A DNA stretch of 63,998 nucleotides, filler included, from Intoshia linei (lineage: Eukaryota > Animalia > Orthonectida): the NCBI GenBank assembly GCA_001642005.1. It is 7 parts of 7 records of this genome, joined end to end, with 100 filler letters (N's around TTAATTAATTAA, not from the genome) between each part and the next. Parts side by side here need not be neighbours in the genome. Positions count along the whole stretch, not along the records: positions 1 to 23,088 come from LWCA01000570.1; 6 more parts are not named here. One strand, written 5' to 3'. Positions 1 to 18,259 of this stretch are shown here, one piece after another; position 1 is the stretch's first letter, and each line of letters opens with the position of its first letter. A program made the translations under genes and the position numbers. A model generated the notes under the pieces. It was not told where the DNA came from and did no database searches. It saw nothing but the letters and a program-made list of their open reading frames with translations.

Positions 1-200
1 CATATATTCAAATAATTTTATACTTAAATTATAATGTATTGAGTGTTTAACATTTTTTATATAACTGTAAAATAATTTCCCGTTCATACATCATTGTGGT
101 TCAATTATAGGTATAAATAATTTTTTTTAAATTTAGTTTAACACTCTAAAATTTTTAAAATAATAATGTCAATGTAATGTCTTTATATATATATATTTAG

Positions 201-606
201 CTTTACCGCCAGGTAAATTATTTTTAAAGACTTAAAATAAACTTTAAATTTTAGTTCAACCTAGTAAACTATTTTAAACAATACACATAAAAATAATAAC
301 AATATTTGTACATAAATACATGTAAAAAATATTAAAATTATTTATAAATTTAGCTCTAGTGCCAAGTAAATTATTTTTGTTCCTTAAAATTGATAAAAAA
401 TAAAAACTAAATGTATTTTAAATTAGCGGCCCCACGTAAAAACATTAATATAAAAATTATCTCTAAAATGTAAAATAATGTATAATTTCTATATCTAGCC
501 GTACCTCCAAGTAATTATTTTAAAAAGTTTTCAATTGGTAAAAAATGAATATTTTTTTTATCAGATAATTAAAAATGTTAAATTATTTTAAAAGTAGCTC
601 CACCAC
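201..606 (+). CDS. Putative micro-exon gene segment encoding a Pro/Thr-rich peptide (six exons alternating 12 and 9 nt)
   Basis: TAG|exon|GTAA units at 201-212, 255-263, 354-365, 427-435, 499-510 and 598-606, separated by 42-90 nt AT-rich introns. Joined in phase 1 they read xLPPVQPTLVPTAPPVPPTPP with no stop. The exons are C-rich islands in near-pure AT sequence. Confidence 0.7.
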
Positions 607-811
607 GTAAAAATTTATTTACAGTGAACGATAGTACGTTCAGACTAGTGTTTCAATATCGGTAAATTATTACCCGTAATTATTTTCAGTTACCGTAAAT
701 TTGAAAAAAATTTGATTCTTATAATAAAACGTTTATTTTTTACTACGTTTTTGAGATATTGATGCAGTGTTAATGTTGAATTAAGTAAGAGTTAATTAAG
801 TCGTTCTACAC

Positions 812-1001
812 TAGTGTGTTCAATGTTTGTAAAATGTACTGAGTTATTTAATGAATACTTAGTTTTACTTTTACTGAGTTATTAGATTTTTTACAGTTTT
901 TATATTGTAAAACTAAGTACATAAAACTTACTGAATTTCTAAAAAAACTAAGTTGAATAGTGTTCAACTTAAATGTTTTAACTTTAATTTAGAACACACT
1001 A
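812..1001. mobile_element. hAT-type MITE
   Basis: TIRs TAGTGTGTTC / GAACACACTA; 8-bp TSD ttctacac / ttttacac (7/8 match). Confidence 0.6.
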
Positions 1002-1839
1002 TTTTACACTCGTTGAAAGTAATAATTAGATTTAACTAATATATCTAGTGTATTAAAATATTTTATATAAAAAACTCTGACGAAGCCAAGTTTTTAATTG
1101 TTTACGTTGTCAAAAATTTTTTATGATTTTACCTTTTTTATTTCAAGGTGAAAAAATAAAAAATATTTATCATTTCGACGACTCGAGACAATTTTGTGAC
1201 GTCAAATCAATGTTTATTTTTGATTCTGATCTATTGGTTAAACGTTAAATTAAAACGTAAACTCAAAATACCAAATAGAATTGATTTAAAAAAACTAACG
1301 TGGATCTATCTAATAAATAAATAAAGCTATCATATGTTTTTTAGCATATATATAATAATATATATCGATTTTGTCAAAGTAACCATCATTTCATATGCTA
1401 GCATATTTAGCATGCTAGAAATGACATCCATAAAAAAATATCATAGCAATAATAACTTATCTTTTTTTAATATTTGTCTCATCTCTGAATGCACTGTCGC
1501 GCACCGTTATACTAAACATTTTTAAATTTTAAAACTTAACAAAATATGTATATTATAGGTATACATTAAATGGATCACCTTTTAAAAAGTTGATCCGTTT
1601 TATCAATGTGCCACTACCCTTCTTTTTTTTTTTTTTTGGTCTTTTTTGCATCGTTTTTTTGGGAATGGAAATTGAAAATGTAGAAAATTTCTACTTATAA
1701 TACATTGCAATGTAGTACATGCTGTGGCAGGCAATAGTTATTCAAATGTGGCTTACAAGTTGCATAATTTTTAAATTGTGAAAAAAAAATTGTACATTTT
1801 TATCAATTCGTTTACATTATATTAATAAAATAATTTTAG

Positions 1840-3838
1840 ATCAATCGGTACAACAACCTGTTATGTCTAGTAATTTTTTTAAAATGTAAAGTTAAAATTA
1901 TTTCAATCAATCTATTTTATAAATTAAGATTGTCAACATTTCTGAAGTAAAACTTGAGTGAATATAATAGACTAAGCTCTAACCCAAATTTTTATTAATA
2001 TTATTTTATCTTTTGAAAGCGTTTTGGAAATCTATCATTCACAGAAAAAATATACTAATTGCCTAATTAATTTCATATATTAATACTAAAATAAATTAAT
2101 ACAATTTAATACAATGATCTTCAATTTAAGATTAAAATTAAACAATTAATTTGAAAAATTTATTAATACTCATAATTATAGTGTCACAAAATGGATATCA
2201 ACCGCAATATCAGCATCAAAGTATATTATATAATATATATTATAACTAGGTGATTGTTATGAACTACATACAAACAATCTAGCACTACCGAGGGCACATT
2301 TTTATTCTAAGAAAAAAATAAATATAAGAAATGCTACTGAGTTAAAAATCTGAGATAACTGCATTAAATGTAAATTTTTTTAAAATTCTAGGATTAAATT
2401 TTATTTTCATTTTATGAAAAGAGTATTTTGTGGTTTTGGCCCCTAATTTAGGGGCCCTAAGGTATTTTTTTTTAAATTTAAATTTATGACAATGTTCATG
2501 ATTTTAAAATCTGTATCAAATTGTATATTATTTTAAATTTTAGGACTCGTCTGATTTAAAACAAAAAAAAAGGAAAATAATTGAAGGGTTTTGACCTGTA
2601 AGATGTGTTTTTGAGATTGAAATTTATTTTACTTTCACCTCCGCAAAAAACTTTAATAGAAATGTAAAATTTTTTAAATTTTAAGACTATTATTTATTTA
2701 TTTATTGAAATAAACGATAACATAACATACATACAAAGAGTTTTATATAAGTTAGGATATACAGACATTATTCACTTAGCTTACTTCCGCTATAACAAAA
2801 AAATAAAAAATTTGCCAATTTTCTTAACCAACTCATGTTTAAGTTGACTTGAATATATATATTTCATAAACTGCAATAGTAGAAATGATATATTTTTTAA
2901 TTATAGATTAACAAATGATGCAACCTGGATATAGTCCAAATAAGTTATTTTAAATTAAAGTTTAATTTTAGATTATCAAGGAATTAATACAGACGTACTA
3001 GAAACTGAAAATTCAGAGACGAAAGGTTAGTTTTTATATATTAGAACTTTATCATAACTTTAGATAACGAGAATTGTAATTTAATTATCTTATATATCAA
3101 TATAAACTGTAATAGTTTTTTCCAACCTCTTTTTATGGTAAGCCCACTAACATTCTTAAAACATCCCTTAACTTCAAAAAATAATTTAGCAACAAATTAA
3201 ACTAATTATTCTTTATATTTTTTATTATTCTTTTTTTCAGTGAATTTTAATTGATTATCAAAAATAGGATACTAGTATAAATAAATACTAACTTAGTATA
3301 ATTATTACTCTTTGAATAAAAAATTTTCAAGTTCAAAATGCTAAAATATTTTTCTATAAGATATAAAAAGTCAGATTTTATAGGTCTAAAAAAAACTTGC
3401 CTAACTAATCATACATGATATAGTGCCAGGCGGCAACCAGTGATTCTTTGAGTAAATATGTAAATTATTTATTTTTTAAGTTTTAAATATTTTATACTAT
3501 AATTGACTCATTATAATCATTTTAATACTGAATTTTCAGACTCTGGATTTTATTTTGTTGAATATATTAGAACCTTTTCAACTCAGTTAAAACTGAAATG
3601 TATTATGTGTAAATTTTCAAAAACGGGGTCGTATAATTTTTTGGTATAAAAAAGTGACCCACGATATGCAAAAGGTTGCTGACCCCTGATATAGTGTATA
3701 ACTAATTTTTTTTGATTTTTTAGACAACGAAAATTTGAGTAAATATTATTTATATGTAGTTTAACTTTGAAAGGTACACGACCCTACATAAGAATTTTTG
3801 CCATTTCTGTAAATGATTTTCTATTTTTTTCGAATTAA
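1840..3838 (+). CDS. Putative micro-exon gene segment encoding a Gln/Asn/Glu-rich peptide
   Basis: AG/GT-bounded exons 1840-1869 (30 nt), 2182-2220 (39), 2972-3025 (54), 3064-3075 (12), 3724-3738 (15) and a terminal exon 3774-3838. Internal exons are all multiples of 3. The phase-1 join reads xQSVQQPVMSMSQNGYQPQYQHQNYQGINTDVLETENSETKDNENYNENLSTRPYIRIFAISVNDFLFFSN*. Confidence 0.55.
2246..2757 (-). mobile_element. Non-autonomous Helitron-like element, internally deleted copy
   Basis: On the minus strand it begins A|TCCTAACTTATATAAA and ends ...ACCTAG|T. Both ends match the copies at 27459-28262 and 50746-51916. Confidence 0.65.
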
Positions 3839-4959
3839 TAAATGTGGTGCCAAAACTGTAATCACAATTTTATTTATCAAAAATTAATGTTACATTTCGT
3901 GTATTCCTTCCCTCCCTACTACACTATATCTTACCATTTATACGGTTAAAATCTCTTAATCCACCTGTTTTTGAATATCCATTATTTTCATTTCTTCATA
4001 AATTTAACTGGTAAAGTACTAGGTAATAAATATAAATACATCATAAATTAAAAAATATAGTTAAATGTAGCATTTACAATTTTTAGATCTTAGTAGTATA
4101 AAATCTTTAAAAAAATATTTCTAAATTTGAAAAATAAAGGTAAATATTTAAATGTAAATCAAATAAATGAAATAATAAAATATATTTTTTTGATGAGAAT
4201 TTTAAAGATACATCCTTTTAAATTATTATAAACTGTTATTTCAACATCATGCAACATTTTCATAAAATCTCCCATATACATAATGTATATAATTAGTTAA
4301 TAAACATTAATGTAACAATATTTCTAGAAGTCAAACGTAAATATTTATATTTATGTTAACAAATAATATAACAATATACTCAAATCTGGTGATACTAATC
4401 CAGCGAATCTACTGTACATAACATATTTTTAATTAGTTAATTTTACATTATTAATTTACATTTTAAAAATATTATTGCATCATAATTAAGTGACTTATAT
4501 ACTTTTAATCTAGATACGATACCAAGTAATTATTCAAATTAAGTAAAAAAAGCTAATTTAAATGTAGATAAATATCTCTTAATCATTTTGCTTCCGGTAT
4601 CCATTGTTCTGTGTTTATTAATTTTCATATCAATTTTAATTTGTGTGATTCGAATAAAAAGAAAAAATCGACTTAGAAGAGTAAAACGTATATCACGAAA
4701 GATTTAATTAGCAAGTTAATAAAAATATTATATTTATTCTTTGATATTGAATGGTAAATTAAAATAAAGTACATTTTTTAATTACAAAATAAATACAATA
4801 TAAATTTGTATAATTTAATTTAAAATTGAAAATCACCAATCGGTAAACTACAATAAAAAGATTAACATATCTCAAATTAAAATAGATCAGTTTCCCAAGT
4901 TGTAATCCCAACGTGTTTCATTTTTATGTGGGCGATGAGATAATTTAAATTTGTTCAAA

Positions 4960-7900
4960 TTAAAAATTGGAAAACATTGATGTTAATAAAAATAATAAAT
5001 GTAAATATACTTCAAAATATTTGGTCAAATAAGGACATTCTTCAGGGCTCGGACCATCTCTATTTCCACTATAACAATCCGAAATTACCTATTTTAAACG
5101 AATATATAAGCATAGTTTAATGTATTAATATAGTGAGCATTTTTGATCGTGACAAGATATTGAAATCGACTCATAAACTTTTACATAAACTCCAAAAATT
5201 GCATAATAACGTAAAATACACAAAATTTAAATAAAAAAAATAAAAAATGTTACAAATTCCCAGATTATTGTTTCCTAAGATCAATTAATAATGTAATTAT
5301 TATTAAAAACGTCAGTTATTTCCATACAATAGATACTACCATTCTAAAAATTGTTACTAGTGTAGGTGACGCTGAAAAGTTTCCATTCCATGAAAAAAAA
5401 TTATACATTCCATAATGTCGCGATCAGAATGTAGACAAACCACTTGGTTGCATCACTCCTACTTTGAGAAACTACTGAGTTAATATATACCAAACACATG
5501 GAACAAGGAAATGCAGACATGCTATATTTGTAAAATTCTTTAGTTTTATAAACATGGATAAAATTGAATTTGTCATAATCACTTTCAATTTTTCCTTTTT
5601 TATGTCTTCGTCTAATTGTACCATCATGATATAGTCGATTCAACAACAAACTAACTTCTTGATCAAGAATTTTAACTTTAACTAGTTGTAACGCATTCAA
5701 ATATGTAGTAATTTCTTGTAAAGTGCACATAGACATTCGTTCTCGTTCTCTGGTGTTCTCTGTTTTTGACATGGATTGTATGTACTAAGATTGTATAAAT
5801 TAAATCGTAATAATTAAAAATACTTTTCTTTTAAAGTATGCTTCAACAGATTTTTGAGCAGCATCAACAAAATCTGTATCAATTTCTCCATTTGTATACC
5901 AGATGTTTCCTCTAACTTTCTCACATGGAACTACATCGTTCATAAAAAGCAATTCTTTACCAGTATCCTAAAATATAACATTATATTCAGAATATATTTG
6001 TATATTACAATGTTTCCAACATATTTAGGGTTTCACCTTAATAAAAAAAGGTCATTTATCAAACTTTACTGAAATTAATGTGACTTAAATAACTTAATTA
6101 GACGTGGGGCTTAACAATAATGTAATACAGGATAACTTCACATCACATATAAAGCAAATTTGAATAAATTCAAATAAAAGTCATACCTTCCAATTTAAAG
6201 CAATTAGATTACATATAAAACCTATGTAATTTGGTGTTTTTAAGGATTTGTTCCAGTTTTTTGAAAATTAAATTTAACATTTTAATTGACTAGGTTATTT
6301 CATACACAATCTAGACTCATTAATCTGAAAAAATCATACAAAGTAACTTCATAAAAATGCCAAATTTTGTACTATCTTGATACCTTTAAAAAAATGTTGA
6401 CAGTGTAGTTTTTGGTGTTTAATGTTCCCTATCATTTTACCATAGTTAATCCCCATTTGACGGATATTAATTTTAAAAGATTACAGCACAAGTAATGTAT
6501 TTTATAACATTATGATCAATAAGCTTTTTGATAGAGTTTTTAAATACTACAGTAAGAATACTTGTTTCTTTGCGAACATTTTTGTACAATATTCCTAAAA
6601 AATGGAATATAAATACAACCTATACATCGGTTAATAAAGTTTCAATTTTTTCACACAATAGTACCCTTACTATAAACAAAATGAGGGGTGAATCAACTAT
6701 CATACATATGTTTTTTAAATATGACGGTTACAAGTAGTACGAAATTTTGCAAGGATCACAAATAATATATAAACAACAAAAAAATTAACAGATAGTAAGT
6801 AAATATGTCCTACATCGAACACTTATTTTTAAGTACAATTGAATTCGTCCATTTCCATTTTCCAATCTCAAATAGATACATTAATCATTATAGCCTGTAA
6901 GGGTCGCATTCTTCTGTTCTTACCCTCCGCATCCGTCCACATTTTTCAACAACGGAATACACCAGAGTTCCCATAAAACTGGTAAAAAGTAATACAAAAT
7001 ACACATTTATTATTTACTTATACAGTAATACCTCACTTAACAAACGTTTTAACCTCTAACGTCTAAGCCTTAGCGAACTGTTAAATAATAAATATTCAAT
7101 AATCAACTCCAAAATTGTTTAAAAAAATTGATCTGATAATTATTCCAGGCTGTATAGTTTAAAAACTTCAACTCACAAATGTGACCATTTCCATTGTAAC
7201 ATTGTAACAAAAGATACATAAAAATTTCCAAGCATCCATTAAGAAATACAATCATACAGTCTTAATCAAAAATTTCATTTTTGATTATTTAAATTTTAAA
7301 AATCCATCTACACTTCAAATAAGTAGAGCTAGTCGGCAGAGCTAGCTAATGTTTTTACATAGTATATACTAATCAATCCATAATATAATTTATAAAAAAT
7401 ATGTTTACCTTGATCATTAGCATCACGAATAACATTGACTATATTTTGTTCGTTTATATCAAAATTACTATCTCTACAAATTTAAAAAATTAATTTTAGT
7501 CTATCCAATTTTTAGGAATAAAATGTTTCATATAAATTAAATTTTAAGATAATTTTATTAAAAGTTAGTTCTCTTTTGTCATATTTACTTATGTCTGTCA
7601 GGTCGTAAATTATTCAGTATCTAAAGCTTAGATTCTAAGCCTATAATTAAAAAAAATCGTATCTACATCTTTATGTCAAAAAACGTCTATTACAGTTTTT
7701 TCCGGGGTGAAAGTAAAATAAATTTTAACCTCTGAAACTCACACTTTACTAGTCAAAAACCCATATCTTTTTTTGAAAATCAAACGAGTTCGAAAATTAA
7801 AAAAAATTACATTCTGATACAGATTATAAAATTATAAATATTATTAATGAAAAAAATTCGGAAGGAATGAATTATATAGATTTTCACCCATATTTCTTTA

Positions 7901-10411: not shown

Positions 10412-13400
10412 ATGAAAAGATGTGTCGAGTTTTCGGCCAAAATTGACATTGAAGATGACAATGTACGAGTTTACAGTAAATATGGGATTATTAAATATGT
10501 GTCATATTCATTTGAAACAAAGTTAAACTATTTAATAGAATCGCATTATGTATATTTGTATAAATATATTTCTAAAAAAACTGTACAAGGCTTAATTTGT
10601 TGTGCAATAAATTTAAATTCGTTAAAAATTGTGATCTATCCAATCTTTAATAATAAATATTTACTTTTATTTTAATTGGAAAATAGGAACAGAAATGAAT
10701 TCTGCCTCTATAGATAAATCGAACAGAATAGATGGTATTATCCATTTACAGTGTAACAGTACATACATTTAGATTTGATTAATACTTTCCTAAATGACAC
10801 AAAATCTTACAAAAATAAAAATTCTAAAGTTATGAAGTCTATGAGTGACAATTTTTTTGATAATGTTAAATTTCAACCTAATCCACAGAAATCAAGTTTT
10901 GCACCCAATCCGTACTTCAAACCGAATATTAGCAACGATGTAATATTATTGAAAATATTAATACAACATGAATGGCCAAGTGTAATGATTTAACTCTTTC
11001 ACTGTCTGATGCAATTTTATATACTATCACCACACGTCTGTAATTTATGTTTTAATTTAAACTTTAATTATTTTTAAATTACCAATGAGAAAATGTATAA
11101 AAATAAAAGAATAGTTTTTCAAAATTATGTTGTATATATCATAGAATACACAAACGTGTAAAGTGAAATTGCTGTGTATAGTATAGAATACACAGACAGT
11201 GAAAGGGTGAAAGGTTTAGAGAGCGCACTCCTTAAACTGGTTCTAAGTTTTTTTTAGGAGACGTTACATATTTTTTGGTATATATCAAGTTTTTGCTAAT
11301 CATGTGCACAAAATGTGGTGGTATTGAGAGGTCTGACTGTATGTTTAAATGTATTCCATTAAACATTATGTACCCACTTCAAAATTAATTTTGTGTAAAG
11401 AGTTTAAAAAACAATTTAGTAATGCGATTTTTTTATTTTTTATAAAATTCTAAGACTTTTTTCATTTAAAAAAAGGGTAATTTGATGTTTTGACATGTAA
11501 TTTTTAATTGACAATTTTTAATATATTATCAACCAATATTTTTCAAATATTACGATTATAATAAAAATTGAAAATGTAAATATTGATCCTACAATTTCAA
11601 AAAAAATGTGCATTGAACGTCTACACATTTCTAACAAAGAAATATGGTGAAAATTTATATAATTTATTCCTTCGCAATTTTTAAATCTCAAATTCTCATT
11701 TCCAAACCATTTTGTTAAAAATTTAACATGTAAATTAAAATTAGAACAACGATTACTAAATTCTATTTTTAATTCTATTTATTACAATCCTTTGCAATAT
11801 TGGTTAAATTCACCTGAAATATGTTTATAAAATGCTGATTCCGTTAACTATTGATACATAATTGGTATTTTTAAGTATTTATTAAATTGGTACTGAATAT
11901 ATATTTTCACATTCAAAATGACAAAATAGGTTTTTATAATTTTATTTATTCTGGAATTTATGCTATTTATGACAATTTTTTAAAATTTGACTGTTTTTAC
12001 TATATTTTTCAATCAATTTTATGACGATGATTATAATCACGTTTGTTTTTATAACGATTAATTTAATAAACTTTTTTTTTATCATGATATTTTTTATCAC
12101 TATTCGTTTTTATCACGATTTTAATTAAACTGAAATTAAAAATAAAAAATTAATAGAAATAACAGAATTAAATAAATAATTTTGTGATATTACATTTTAA
12201 TAATAAATTAACTAATGGTAAATAGCAAAATAGTTAACATTTAAAGATAAAGCATGTATAGTTCTCATTATTTCTGTGTGATTCAACATTATTCTTTTTA
12301 TATGAAACTTTAATTTCATAATGCAATCTTTTGTAAGGCTATTCTCCAGCTATTGCCTTAATGTATATACCACGTTGGAACTCATGTTCTTCCTTGAGTT
12401 TTCCAATGAGCTTCCAGACAATAGGATGAATCAATTAAAATCAATCTTCCAATGAACAAAACCATAGACTCATATAAAATATCATTCTCTAATCCATTTA
12501 ATATTCCATCTCAAGTTTCGTGATTAATCCCCACTGGGGATGCCCAGCTTAAATTCTTGGCTTGAGCAATTTATTAAAACATAAATAAATGGAAAGTAGT
12601 CTAGCATAGCTAGAATACTGAAAATATCAATTAATAAACGTATATTTAAATCATTACATGATGATGTGTGACATGTTGATGAAAGATTTAATGCGATATT
12701 ATTAATTTTAATGATAATTTTGATAAAAACGACGTTTATTAAATTAATCGTGATAAAAACTAACATGATTATAATAATCGTGTTTAAAAATATGTGCACC
12801 GATATGATGGTCCACCTGAAACAAATTTGGGAACCACTCTGTAGTATTTGATACGAATTCAGATTTAATGTAAAAACACTTTAAGAGTGATAATATATTA
12901 TATAACTGATTGATGTAAATAAAGGTGACAATCACACTTTATTACACACTCCTTTAAAGGATTGATAATAGTGCATAGTAAGATTTTTAAGTTAGATTTT
13001 CAACGTGAATTTATTTTTTAGTTTAAATTTAAGTATAATAAAAAGTGCCCTTCGCAGAGCTAGGTCCTGTTTGTTCGTAGTACATAACGGACAACCTAGT
13101 ACTTCTATAATATTCTATATTATATGGTAGCACTATTTTAAATGATAATTTTTATTGAAAAATTTTCCAAAAATTGGGTGATAAAGTGCGTTTTTTTTTT
13201 GAACCAAACTTTTAAGAGTGGTTTTTAAGAATTTTTTTGTGAACCAAACTTTTAAGGGGGGTTTTTAGGTAGTTTTTTTTGAACTAAAATTTCAAGAGAA
13301 GTGAAAAATTTTATACCTACCAATTGAACGATAATTGATATCAATATAGAAACAGCATTACACTAACAAAACAAAGTAATTAAGCAGTGTATTTTAAACC

Positions 13401-16400
13401 AGATTAGGTTAAATAACAGCGTGCAAAATGAAGGAAGTTGTGTATTATTATAAGCCAAAATTAATTTACGTCACATTTCAGTCTGCAAAATGAATGAAAT
13501 TTACATTATTATAAGCCAAAATATATACTATACGAAAAGAAATTTGAGTTTATTTTATAAATTTTTAGATTTTGAATTTTTTGTATTTTTAGTATGATTT
13601 TATATTTTTATCGTTTTTAAACCCGTTTAAAAGTTTGGTTTAAAAATTATTTCCTAAAAACCCCCCTTGAAAATTTGGTTTAAAAAAAATCTTAAAAACC
13701 CCCTCTTAAAGTTTGGTTCAAAAAAAATTACTAAAACCCAAAATTAAACTAAAATATAAATGAAGTTTTACACATTCTACGACTTATCCATGAATTGTAT
13801 ACATTCTACGACTTGCCCATAGAATGTGTACATTTCACAGTTTTACACATTCTATACGACATATACAAAGTAAGTAAGCATCATTAATAGTATAATAATA
13901 AGATAATTATCAAATAAAGAAATGAAAACTGTAAATCTTAGCAGTTTAGTAATTGAATTTTAGACAAATAATTACACAATGCATTACAAGACCTATGAAA
14001 ATGAAATAAACCTTGCCCCAAACTATGCAAACTCAGAAGTAGGTAGTTTCATTAATTCTTCACAAACATACGATGTGTCAATGTATAGTAAAGAATATAT
14101 ACCCAAAAATGCGCAATCTAAATTAGATGAAAATTTTTACAGAAATTATAAAAAAGAAAAAATATTGTACAACGATTCTAATAGTATGCCACGAAATTGG
14201 AACGAACAAATGATTTATCCAAATAAATGCAATAATATATACGACGATACACTCATTTCAATGTATGGTTGTGACTATGATAATTTTGCGTCTGTTCCAA
14301 ATGGGATCGCTTTAGAAAACGTGCCAATGAATGATGTTTATCGTGATTCACAACCGACTAATTCTAAAAATTTTTACATGCAACAAAACTCTAATTTTCT
14401 TAAAAACACTGATAATAATGTGTCACCCATTTTTAGTGTAAATAATTCTCGAGATGACAGTTTCAATGTATATAACCGAAACGTAAATACGGATGAATCA
14501 ACCCACAAAGCTAATAGAATGAACAATAGTACAGATCAAAGTACTGGTAAAATGTCTGTTTTGAGCCCAATATATCATGAATATAAATATAAAAAGGGTA
14601 AGAGAACTAGCAATCATAATGTCATTGAAAAAAGATATCGCATGAGTATCAACGATAAAATAATGGAATTGAAACAAATATTAACATCTGAATCTGAATT
14701 GCGGGTCTCTAAGGCTATGATTCTAAAATTGGCAATTGCAAGAATTAAACACTTGCAAAGTATAAACCGAGAACTAAATTTGGAAAATAAAAAATTAAAA
14801 CAGGCAATTTATTGCAATGGATATGTCACACCTGCTTTGAATACTGATGATTTTCAAACTAATATGGCGGGAAACGGGCATAGTGAAAATGCTCCGTTCG
14901 GTTTAAATTTGAAGGAGAGTACTGAACATGTCACATGCAATTATCCAGATTCTTCACCAATTATGCGCTCCAAGGCGAAACAAAAGATCAATATTACGCA
15001 CCCGAGAACGAATGTGTATGCATTTATACTGCTGTGTGCACTATTTTCCTTTAATCCTTGTTCAGTGATATCAAGTACATTTTCTTGGTATCCAATATTT
15101 GGAAAAATGGAAACAAAGTCAATCCAAACACGCACAAATGTTCCTAGTCGTGTTTTATTTTCTGTTAATAATAATCCCAGTATAGATGAATCGATAATGG
15201 TAGTTAATTCTTCTGCTTTCAGTGTATTTTATATCGTATTTTTTTGGGGTTTTGGATGGATGATCAATTTTGTCATTATGATGATTTTATTTAAGTTTTT
15301 TTTTTTTTTACCACGTCAAAAACTATTATCTGAAAAAGATTCATCGACAACTGAAAAATTGAAAAAAAGCGGACCTGCCTGGGAAAAAGAAGAATGGGAT
15401 CAATTGCACAAGGATTTTGATTTACTTTCAAAAAAACTAGAATTTGGTCACCTGGAAAGCATTTCAAATATTAAGAAAAAGTTTAATCAAAAAAATGAAC
15501 AAGAATATGAATCTTGTAATACAAATACTGCTGATGAAAATTCTAAAATTCGCAATAAAACACTTCAAAGCATTATGGCACACTTCGAACAATATGATAC
15601 AATAAAATTTGTCGAAAACATTGGCTTTTTAAAAATTTCCTTTGCTCTTTTTATTCAAATAATTTTTTACATTTTCAATTTTTTTCTCAATCCCTACATA
15701 ATGATGAATCGGGTATTCACTACTCCCGATTATTTGAAGATTGCTTATTTATATGATCGTATGTTGCAAATTTGTTTCCACGAAATTTGTACCACTGAAC
15801 CCAAAAAACGCCGTAAACACTTGAATATTTTAAGCTTGTATTTCGCTTTTTCTTCTTTGAATGCTGTGAAAAACGTAAAAACAAAAAATTATTTGGATCA
15901 AAAAATTGCAATTTACTTTAATGCTTCTATTATTTGTCGACTAGTTTGTCCTGACTGGATAAAGAAAATTATGCATCGTTATTTTTGTAGGCGTGCCATG
16001 CGGTTATATTACAAGTTAAATAAACCGCACGATACATTTCATTGGCTGAAACATCCATTGGGAAACAAATTTTTTTTTTCAGATGAAGGCAAACATGCAT
16101 TGAGCAACTCATTCAAATGGCACGACTTTAACTTGTCTCGCCAACAGTTCACATTTGACCCATTGATTAAATTCAAACAACATTTTGTATGCTGGCTTTT
16201 CAATAATGCATTAATTAACTCACCAAAAAATTTGGAATATCCTACTACAACCAATTTTCCTAGACCCGAAGACACAATGACTCCATTGATGTATCTAGGG
16301 AATATTAAAAATGTTTGCAGTCGAAGGGACGATTATGAAATTGTAGAGTTTTGGTGGTGTTCTTATATTGAATTGTCTGCGAGGTGGCCTTTTTGCAACA

Positions 16401-18259
16401 ATGAAAAAATGAAAAGAATGACTTACAGTTACAAATATATACAAAAATCTACTGGAAATGAAAATTTCTTACCTTTAATGAATGTTTCTATTCTGTTATA
16501 TTTCTCTGGACAAATTGTTATTAATTTCGACAATGCCAATTTAAATCATTTACAAGATTGTATTCATTCAATAAGGGAACAATTTTATATTATTGTCACA
16601 AAATTTTTTAATTTTTCTGATACGTGCAATATCATCCTGTTTAAATTTTTCGATTGGTTGATAATTTGTAAGTTCAAAGCTTTAAGTTATTATCAAGATC
16701 ACAACGAGGTATATGCCATTTCTGTGGCCAAGAATATTGAAAAAGATATTGCCGTTATGTCAACTATATGTCTCCGTTTACACCATTCCATTAAATCTGA
16801 TTTAGAAACCAAAGTATTATAATTATTTCATTTAATTATATTTTTATAGATCAAACTTCACAAAACAATGCTTCTGATTTTAAAAAGAGTTAATCTAGTC
16901 ATTTTATTGGATCAGGTTAAATGAGTTGATAAATTTGAGAAACAAAAAATTGGTATTTATTATATTCATATTTTAATATATAAAATATGTACATTGTACA
17001 ATAGGTACTAGTAGGGTTTTTATGATTCTTGATTCTATCCATTGTTTAACTTTTTTTTAGTCTCACACCGCTCAAGTAAAAAAATTTTTCCCTATCATAA
17101 AAAAATTTACTCTAGCATCACCAATTAAATTAGAATGGTAGTCCTGTCATTATATGGAGCTCGTCATAGGACTTTAGTCTTTGAAGATCTAAGACCTTGG
17201 ATTGCATAGTTTTATTCATATTATGATATTATTAAATTTATTTGAAAAATATGCGTCCCTTGTACCACTTTAGAGATCCCTAATTTGAATGTAATAAATA
17301 GTGTGGACCATTTTCTGTGCTGTAACATGGGCGCAATAAATTATACCAACGGAGTGATAATGGGTTTAGAACATGGGTGTCAATTATGCGACCCACGGGA
17401 CATTTACATCCCTAGTGGTGGACTGTGCGAGCCGTGATATAATATACATTTTTATTTTTATAGCAATTTTTTACTTAATATTACCATTTTTATTGTTTCT
17501 TATTTTATTTTATGAATTAAAATTATTATAAATTAATTAAAACTGTTAGTTTTAACATAATTTTTTAGTAAAGATATTTTTTGTGTATCCCGTAGAATAA
17601 TTTTTTTTGCACATTTGACCCCGAAGCAATTTGAGTCTGACACCCCTGGTTTAGAGTTTTAACTTTAGACTCTAGAGCAGTGATTCCCAATTGGGTCCTT
17701 GGACTCCTAGGTCAGTGATGGCAAAAATATGACACACGTGTCACTAGTACCACGCACTCGGACTCTGCCTGACACGCTGGTAAAAAGCTTATTTGAAATT
17801 TTTAATATGTTGTGGAAAAATTAAATCAAAAGTGTGTAATAATAGAAAAGTATATCTAAAATTATTTATCATTTAAAAAAGAACACGCAACTAGAAAAGA
17901 AAACAGCAAAATTTTTCTATAACACGCTAACTAAAATTTCTTGCCATTACTGCCCTTGAGGAGTAAACTTTTGATATTCAAATTTTTTCTATGGATCAAG
18001 TGAAATAGACTGTATCACCATAATTTTAACTAAAATGAAAAAAATACCATTGCACTCCAATGTAATTTTGAATACTATTATATATATACTTACATACATT
18101 CATTTTCTATTATTTGATATATATACATGTATTATTTTAGCTCAAAATTGTATACAGGTTTCTTTTTTGTTTCAATATTCACAACGTCAACAAGATTCAA
18201 ACATATCTTATTTTTCATCATTGAAACAAACAGTATCCTCCATTCTCAAAGTCAAATAA
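10412..18259 (+). CDS. SREBF: Sterol regulatory element-binding protein (membrane-bound bHLH-Zip transcription factor)
   Basis: bHLH HNVIEKRYRMSINDKI carries the SREBP-diagnostic Tyr. TM1 has the NP motif (ALFSFNP), followed by luminal RVLF (S1P-type site), TM2 and the C-terminal regulatory domain. Exons: (10412-10475 tentative), 10687/10695-10734, 10773-10939, 13964-16813, 16850-16924 (TGA) or to 16952, and possibly 18141-18259. Confidence 0.9.
10994..11207. mobile_element. piggyBac-like MITE
   Basis: TTAA|CTCTTTCACTGTCTG ... CAGACAGTGAAAGGG|TGAA: terminal inverted repeats with a degenerate TTAA target. Confidence 0.6.
11500..13099 (+). mobile_element. Helitron-like family copy, interrupted by the MULE, with an intact 3' end
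   Basis: Colinear with 27150-28262; ends ctgtttgttcgtagtacataacggacaacCTAG|T. Confidence 0.6.
12024..12782 (-). mobile_element. Non-autonomous Mutator-like element with a transposase remnant
   Basis: About 65-bp imperfect inverted repeats at 12024-12090 and 12712-12782. The internal minus-strand peptide HPIVWKLIGKLKEEHEFQRGIYIKAIAGE* resembles MULE transposase C-termini. Confidence 0.6.
13171..13745. mobile_element. Foldback-type element with inverted arrays of ~40-bp subterminal repeats
   Basis: The left arm has three tttttgaaccaaacttttaagrgggg-type units. The right arm has their reverse complements (ccccctcttaaagtttggttcaaaaa). Confidence 0.6.
17372..17648. mobile_element. hAT (Charlie/Buster-like) MITE; related copy at 57348-57660
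   Basis: TIRs CATGGGTGTCA / TGACACCCCTG; TSD gtttagaa / gtttagag. Confidence 0.7.
17713..17952. mobile_element. hAT MITE with CAGTGATGGCAA termini
   Basis: CAGTGATGGCAA ... TTGCCATTACTG; same terminus as the element at 60719-61303. Confidence 0.55.

Follow-up and report, generated by a model that had tools for sequence, protein, structure and literature searches.

Six short C-rich islands near the start of a contig of the orthonectid Intoshia linei raise the question of whether they are the exons of a gene built like the micro-exon genes (MEGs) of schistosomes. The contig makes up positions 1 to 23,088 of the window, the 63,998-nt stretch of DNA (filler included) that was analyzed. The original prediction had read the islands as a Pro-rich micro-exon gene. 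We conclude from the sequence that they are probably genuinely spliced coding micro-exons. The symmetric, Pro-rich micro-exons of that prediction were upheld. Its scope of a whole gene was not, as the six appear to be only part of a larger gene, which continues beyond the end of the contig.

The six islands (E1 to E6) lie on the plus strand, with TAG immediately before each of them and GTAA immediately after. E1 (201-212) is 12 nt long and reads CTTTACCGCCAG. It is followed by E2 (255-263; 9 nt, TTCAACCTA), E3 (354-365; 12 nt, CTCTAGTGCCAA), and E4 (427-435; 9 nt, CGGCCCCAC). E5 (499-510) contains 12 nt with the sequence CCGTACCTCCAA, and E6 (598-606) contains 9 nt with the sequence CTCCACCAC. 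All six C-rich islands were present where they had been predicted, with the alternating lengths of 12 and 9 nt and the TAG and GTAA edges. Their GC content was 0.44 to 0.89, and that of the spacers between them was 0.10 to 0.14. The five spacers are 42, 90, 61, 63, and 87 nt long. E1 is preceded by 200 nt of contig sequence. A minus-strand reading of the array was rejected; its edges become TTAC and CTA, which are not splice signals. E6 is preceded by a tandem acceptor, AG-TAG (593-606), with the upstream AG at 595, 3 nt away. This is a NAGNAG-type alternative site. If it were used, it would add 3 in-frame bases (a 12-nt variant) and give I-A-P-P instead of T-P-P.

The same contig carries an annotated gene that could be compared with the array. 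The open reading frame (ORF) at 13979-16822 (947 codons) is 100% identical to the hypothetical protein A3Q56_04466 [Intoshia linei]. The SL1 leader of nematodes was not found, and a nematode origin was rejected. The full protein (1,067 aa) was mapped to the window. Its introns have the donors GTAAAT, GTAATA, and GTATTA and the acceptor TAG, and they include one of 37 nt and one of 3 kb. A second gene, on contig C1938, has introns of about 40 nt with GTAA and TAG ends. The median intron of I. linei is 57 bp (PMC6543705). On the signals and sizes of the annotated introns and on the published median, the array signals and spacer sizes therefore follow the normal intron grammar of the species.

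A3Q56_04466 is an SREBP-like bHLH-zip gene at 10412-16921 (plus strand), with the 947-codon ORF as its main exon. A3Q56_03607, on another contig, is a 64%-identical paralogue, and I. linei therefore has two SREBP-like genes. The 3-kb intron lies in the first half of A3Q56_04466 (10940-13963) and is full of tandem and inverted repeats. It contains tandem repeats of 38 to 40 nt (TTTTTTTTTGAACCAAACTTTTAAGAGGGGTTTTTAAGAA) that are arrayed at 13192-13298 and at 13630-13748, in reverse complement and about 400 nt apart. Together these two arrays form a large inverted-repeat structure within the intron.

The islands are highly non-random and far beyond chance in their arrangement. The I. linei assembly that was searched contained 41.6 Mb in 3,520 contigs. 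Genome-wide, the pattern TAG-N8-CCAN-GTAA had 44 matches and TAG-N5-CCAN-GTAA had 45. Reversed-pattern controls were commoner, with 70 and 98 matches. The array contig is the only place where the approximately 89 pattern matches cluster. In a control scan of 267 kb of other I. linei sequence, 248 isolated micro-exon candidates were found, 39% of them with a length divisible by three. This control contained no cluster of at least three candidates; the array has five or six in 410 nt. The other exact match of the 12-nt exon consensus, on C1938, lies within an ordinary exon of an unrelated gene and was set aside as chance.

The array is also distinct from the dispersed repeats of the genome. A DNA search with 150-700 returned other genomic copies that match from position 644 onward only. 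These belong to a MITE-like dispersed repeat of about 600 nt (644-1242) that has at least 17 copies. It is inserted 38 nt downstream of E6, and it excludes the array. The original prediction had named a satellite or a transposon subterminal repeat as the finding that would speak against it. The searches did not bear this out, and the array was absent from all copies of the 644-1242 element that were found. An Rfam search of 1-5400 gave no match. A multigene family, as in the MEGs, was not borne out either; the array locus was single-copy in the genome search.

One reading frame of the joined islands resembles coding sequence. Offset 0 of joined E1 to E6 contains a stop and has a third-position A+T of 0.19. 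Offset 1 (FTASSTY...) has a third-position A+T of 0.30. Offset 2, which corresponds to phase-1 introns, gives LPPVQPTLVPTAPPVPPTPP. It is open, has a third-position A+T of 0.75, and has the best codon log-likelihood. For comparison, the third-position A+T of the 947-codon ORF on the same contig is 0.72. The predicted phase-1 join thus gives LPPVQPTLVPTAPPVPPTPP as claimed, and it is the sole frame that is both open and consistent with the codon bias of the genome. It is rich in Pro, Thr, and Val, with TAPP- and PTPP-type motifs. When micro-exons from three contigs (described below) were pooled, third-position A+T was 36/46 in phase 1 versus 8/49 and 21/46 in the other frames (P ~1e-5). All 14 of the 14 robust micro-exons on these contigs have lengths in multiples of 3, compared with 34 to 39% in controls. 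Every exon is a multiple of 3 and every intron is in phase 1, and any subset of exons could therefore be skipped in frame.

The array appears to have grown by duplication. Segments 148-404 and 301-549 are 64.5% similar to each other over 268 nt. In the unit alignment, conservation was highest in the 12-nt exons and in the approximately 15 nt that flank them on either side. Both results support a three-fold 12-plus-9 arrangement and sustain the claim that a two-exon unit was duplicated in tandem. These paralogous units do not allow purifying selection on the coding sequence to be demonstrated, because the exon flanks are approximately as conserved as the exons.

Related modules are present on other contigs. 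Positions 1-76 form an intronic block that is 95% identical to C753:572-497, on the minus strand of C753. From this overlap, the gene would therefore continue past the contig edge, split by the assembly. C753 (1-868) is 868 nt long, and its first and last 36 nt are identical. This suggests that it may be a collapsed tandem repeat with an 832-nt unit, or a circle. Its minus strand contains micro-exons of 9, 6, 6, and 15 nt between TAG and GTAA, whose phase-1 reading is IQPPVPPRQQQ. C2646:44088-44256 (plus strand) contains a 92% copy of a stretch of the C753 unit. The copy keeps the TAG and GTAA around a 6-nt exon, in which CCA has changed to CAA (Pro to Gln). C487 (1,214 nt) carries micro-exons of 6, 15, 12, and 15 nt on its minus strand, and these give QQGPVLQPSPQPHNQ in phase 1. 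The micro-exons of C753 and C487 are P/Q/V-rich in the phase of the array. Two of the C487 candidates are discounted. The first, of 6 nt (CGAACT), is in a high-copy repeat, and the one of 12 nt (AACCCGTTCAAT) has weak sites and would make TAA with the next exon.

The 5' end of the gene would lie upstream of the contig edge. The original prediction had proposed to look in this direction for a signal-peptide exon, and a start exon of this kind was not seen in 1-200, C753, or C487. The product would nevertheless carry a signal peptide. At 106-115, TATAG and GTATAA, which resemble an acceptor and a donor, stand side by side with nothing between them, roughly at the position of the 6-nt exon CTCCAG of C753. 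A micro-exon may have been lost here precisely, although the alignment is poor in this part. The most economical reading of these contigs would be that the assembly has shattered one gene, or one tight cluster, made up of duplicated modules that each consist of an intron and a micro-exon.

Downstream of the array, a seventh micro-exon was found. E12 (4514-4525, plus strand) is 12 nt long and reads ATACGATACCAA between TAG and GTAA, and it shares strand and phase with the array. It is the sole further match of the 12-nt pattern on the array contig; about 0.01 chance matches are expected on one strand of a 23-kb contig, as estimated from the genome-wide count. Its flanks (ATCTAG and CCAAGTAATTATT) match those of E5. 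Its sequence and flanks clearly mark it as a sister exon of E1, E3, and E5.

E12 is followed, after a 42-nt intron, by a putative terminal exon (E13; 4568-4707, plus strand). It begins after TGTAG with a phase-1 entry, encodes KYLLIILLPVSIVLCLLIFISILICVIRIKRKNRLRRVKRISRKI, and has a stop at 4705-4707. It encodes a 25-residue hydrophobic helix with a Kyte-Doolittle 19-residue maximum of 3.17. The helix precedes a basic tail, RIKRKNRLRRVKR, in which 9 of the next 13 residues are K or R. Among 4,630 control TAG sites, none led into a phase-1 ORF that is open and encodes a transmembrane helix followed by a basic tail. An AATAAA at 4718-4723, 11 nt past the stop, is a possible poly(A) signal that is weak in AT-rich DNA. 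The micro-exons may join this transmembrane exon in one mRNA; we regard the link as plausible and hold it less firmly than the splicing of E1 to E6. The original prediction pointed to the secreted products of schistosome MEGs. The putative terminal exon codes for a transmembrane helix, so the product looks membrane-anchored rather than like a small secreted peptide.

A search of the terminal exon against 1.84 billion representative proteins gave no match, and the gene is therefore unannotated, unexpressed, or unsampled. Pfam returned only insignificant matches, to transmembrane regions. A paralogue of the terminal exon was not found in the I. linei genome. The expectation that standard annotation would miss the locus proved right, and no annotated product was found for it. 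Such a gene would mark a blind spot of both annotation and assembly. It would be invisible to ORF-based calling and shattered over small contigs by its own internal repeats. Beyond this 3' end, at 5404-5967 on the minus strand, exon-like ORF pieces of another gene converge on the micro-exon gene. The best coding score in that region belongs to a 123-aa ORF at 5401-5772.

The gap between E6 and E12 is 3.9 kb, far above the species median intron. About 1.65 kb of it consists of five repeat insertions from dispersed families (644-1242, 2218-2331, 2348-2761, 3181-3416, and 3431-3717). The element at 3431-3717 (about 250 to 290 nt) had about 3,500 first-look candidates genome-wide, and that at 2218-2331 had >1000. 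Both are very abundant families of short nonautonomous elements for a 41.6-Mb genome.

Intermediate exons may lie in the remainder of the gap. In the nonrepeat DNA between E6 and the terminal exon, 5 of 10 acceptor candidates had a length in multiples of three and an open phase 1, compared with 19% in controls. This gives modest statistical support. A 30-nt candidate at 1840-1869 (plus strand) is bounded by TAG and GTAA and is open in phase 1 (..QSVQQPVMS), with no repeat among the matches listed. A 54-nt candidate at 2972-3025 (plus strand) is bounded by TAG and GTTAGT, is open in phase 1, and is unique in the genome. A candidate micro-exon of 15 nt at 3724-3738 (plus strand), also with TAG and GTAA and an open phase 1, lies just past the high-copy repeat 3431-3717. 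The candidate at 4328-4336 (plus strand) is a multiple of three and is open in phase 1. Three others were rejected or left in doubt. A 69-nt candidate (3541-3609) fits in phase and was rejected because it lies within the very high-copy repeat 3431-3717. A 39-nt candidate (2182-2220; SQNGYQPQYQHQ) is doubtful, with its donor at the edge of the >1000-copy repeat 2218-2331. The 28-nt island at 3424-3451 was rejected because its phase-1 reading is interrupted by a stop and it adjoins the repeat 3431-3717.

Three other explanations of the locus were weighed. The array may be a decaying relic, that is, a former micro-exon gene or part of one that is now a dead, transposon-riddled locus and has lost correct splicing or translation. 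The five repeat insertions within 4 kb downstream of the array would fit such decay, as would the possible lost exon at 106-115, where the alignment is poor. The locus is single-copy, its terminal exon has no detectable paralogue, and that exon has no match in representative proteins. However, the splice signals of E1 to E6, E12, and E13 are all intact, their phase-1 frame is open, and the codon-bias signature is preserved. The transposons are in introns and not in exons, and long, repeat-laden introns also occur in the annotated gene on the same contig. We consider a relic unlikely. The islands could instead be noncoding. They would then be protein-binding sites, or the conserved cores of a satellite or of a tandem repeat with few copies, and their splice-like edges would be coincidental. 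Their units are indeed tandem duplicates with flanks conserved as well as the cores, and C753 has identical 36-nt ends, as in a collapsed tandem repeat. Yet the robust islands on three contigs are without exception multiples of three (controls, 34 to 39%). All islands are bounded by the acceptor and donor motifs of the genome itself, on one strand only, and they share one open frame with the correct third-position bias. There was no Rfam match, and no copies of the array are scattered through the genome. A noncoding repeat is very improbable on this evidence.

The remaining alternative accepts the micro-exons and divides the locus into two genes. The array gene would end soon after 606, and E12 and the transmembrane exon would belong to another, small gene starting within 1243-4513. 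Its end could be a read-through into 607-662, where a stop is reached at 660-662, or one of the candidate exons. That stop, however, sits within an inserted repeat. The 3.9-kb gap is about the mean gene spacing expected in a 41.6-Mb genome. A start for the second gene could be the ATG at 1334. The hydrophobic ORF that it opens can reach a phase-1 end at a weak GTTATA donor, but this ORF is noise of the kind typical of AT-rich DNA, and its donor is poor. E12 is also a clear sister exon of E1, E3, and E5 and shares their strand and phase, which argues against a division. We think two genes improbable, slightly more so than a relic.

The reading that we prefer is that E1 to E6 are symmetric phase-1 micro-exons, constitutively or alternatively spliced, of a single-copy I. 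linei gene. We hold this to be probable. The gene would be made of tandemly duplicated intron-plus-micro-exon modules. It would start upstream of the contig edge, with related modules on C2646, C753, and perhaps C487, and run on the plus strand through transposon-bloated introns. It would end with the 12-nt sister exon at 4514-4525 and the terminal exon at 4568-4707, which would anchor the product in the membrane and give it a short, basic tail on the cytoplasmic side. The product of E1 to E6 would be an extended extracellular stalk rich in Pro, Thr, Val, and Gln that is probably O-glycosylated.

This predicted product can be compared with two kinds of known proteins. A Pro/Thr-rich segment, a single transmembrane helix, and a basic tail form a layout that is matched by the array and the putative terminal exon. 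Mucin-like type I membrane glycoproteins and the array gene would share a P/T-rich segment and a 25-residue helix that is followed by RIKRKNRLRRVKR. Unlike in those glycoproteins, the stalk would be encoded in micro-exons and not in one large repeat exon, and there is no family assignment. Fast skeletal troponin T is a conserved animal gene with a 5' cluster of alternative micro-exon cassettes. By analogy, both genes would have adjacent frame-preserving exons (about 12 to 18 nt in troponin T) that are freely combined and vary a disordered segment. Troponin T is conserved and well annotated and has acidic segments, whereas the array gene is an orphan, is P/T/Q-rich, and has recent tandem modules.

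The closest comparison is with the schistosome MEGs. Micro-exon genes are regarded as a peculiarity of flatworms (schistosomes and their relatives) that is tied to life in the host. Orthonectids are highly reduced parasites that are placed with annelids. Tandem internal exons of 6 to 36 bp with lengths in multiples of three characterize MEGs. Such exons were found in the window (12, 9, 12, 9, 12, 9, and 12 nt), on C753 (9, 6, 6, and 15 nt), and on C487 (6, 15, 12, and 15 nt). The conventional 3' exon of the MEG layout is also present at the array locus (4568-4707, putative). In schistosome MEGs, about 80% of the coding region is in symmetric exons of 6 to 36 bp, and the products are secreted or membrane anchored (PMC5825161). 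The visible part of the array gene, with its 5' end off the contig, contains 75 to 129 nt in micro-exons versus 137 coding nt in the terminal exon. MEG-11, MEG-14, and MEG-32.1 are membrane anchored and heavily O-glycosylated (PMC5825161). The tandem exons of MEGs have lengths in multiples of three, which are thought to permit variation by alternative splicing (PMC3961193).

Schistosoma MEGs and the array are alike in their tandem short exons in multiples of three, their duplication-born length patterns, and their in-frame skippability. Both would encode a low-complexity, probably O-glycosylated product that is predicted to be surface exposed with a membrane anchor, and both belong to endoparasites. 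Unlike the MEGs, the array is in an orthonectid and not in Platyhelminthes, it is single-copy, and the introns within it are 42 to 90 nt long. The organism is not a flatworm, and the likeness is therefore a resemblance of architecture and not a shown homology; homology at the sequence level is not expected. Of the predicted MEG likeness, exon size and symmetry hold and a membrane anchor is plausible, at the level of architecture. The locus works like a MEG on paper, and we do not file it in any MEG family.

A literature search retrieved no paper linking orthonectids with micro-exon genes. If true, a MEG-type architecture in an orthonectid would be the first case outside flatworms, as far as this search shows. 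More speculatively, orthonectids may have independently evolved a MEG-like, mucin-like surface protein with dozens of micro-exons over C2646, C753, C487, and C1321 (the array contig), whose combinatorial skipping would produce variant surface proteins. We offer this broader reading tentatively and consider it rather doubtful. The array gene would suggest that symmetric micro-exons have been recruited convergently to build exposed low-complexity proteins, and possibly to vary them. If that is so, protein variation by micro-exons would be a solution shared by unrelated endoparasites, schistosomes and orthonectids, at the host interface.
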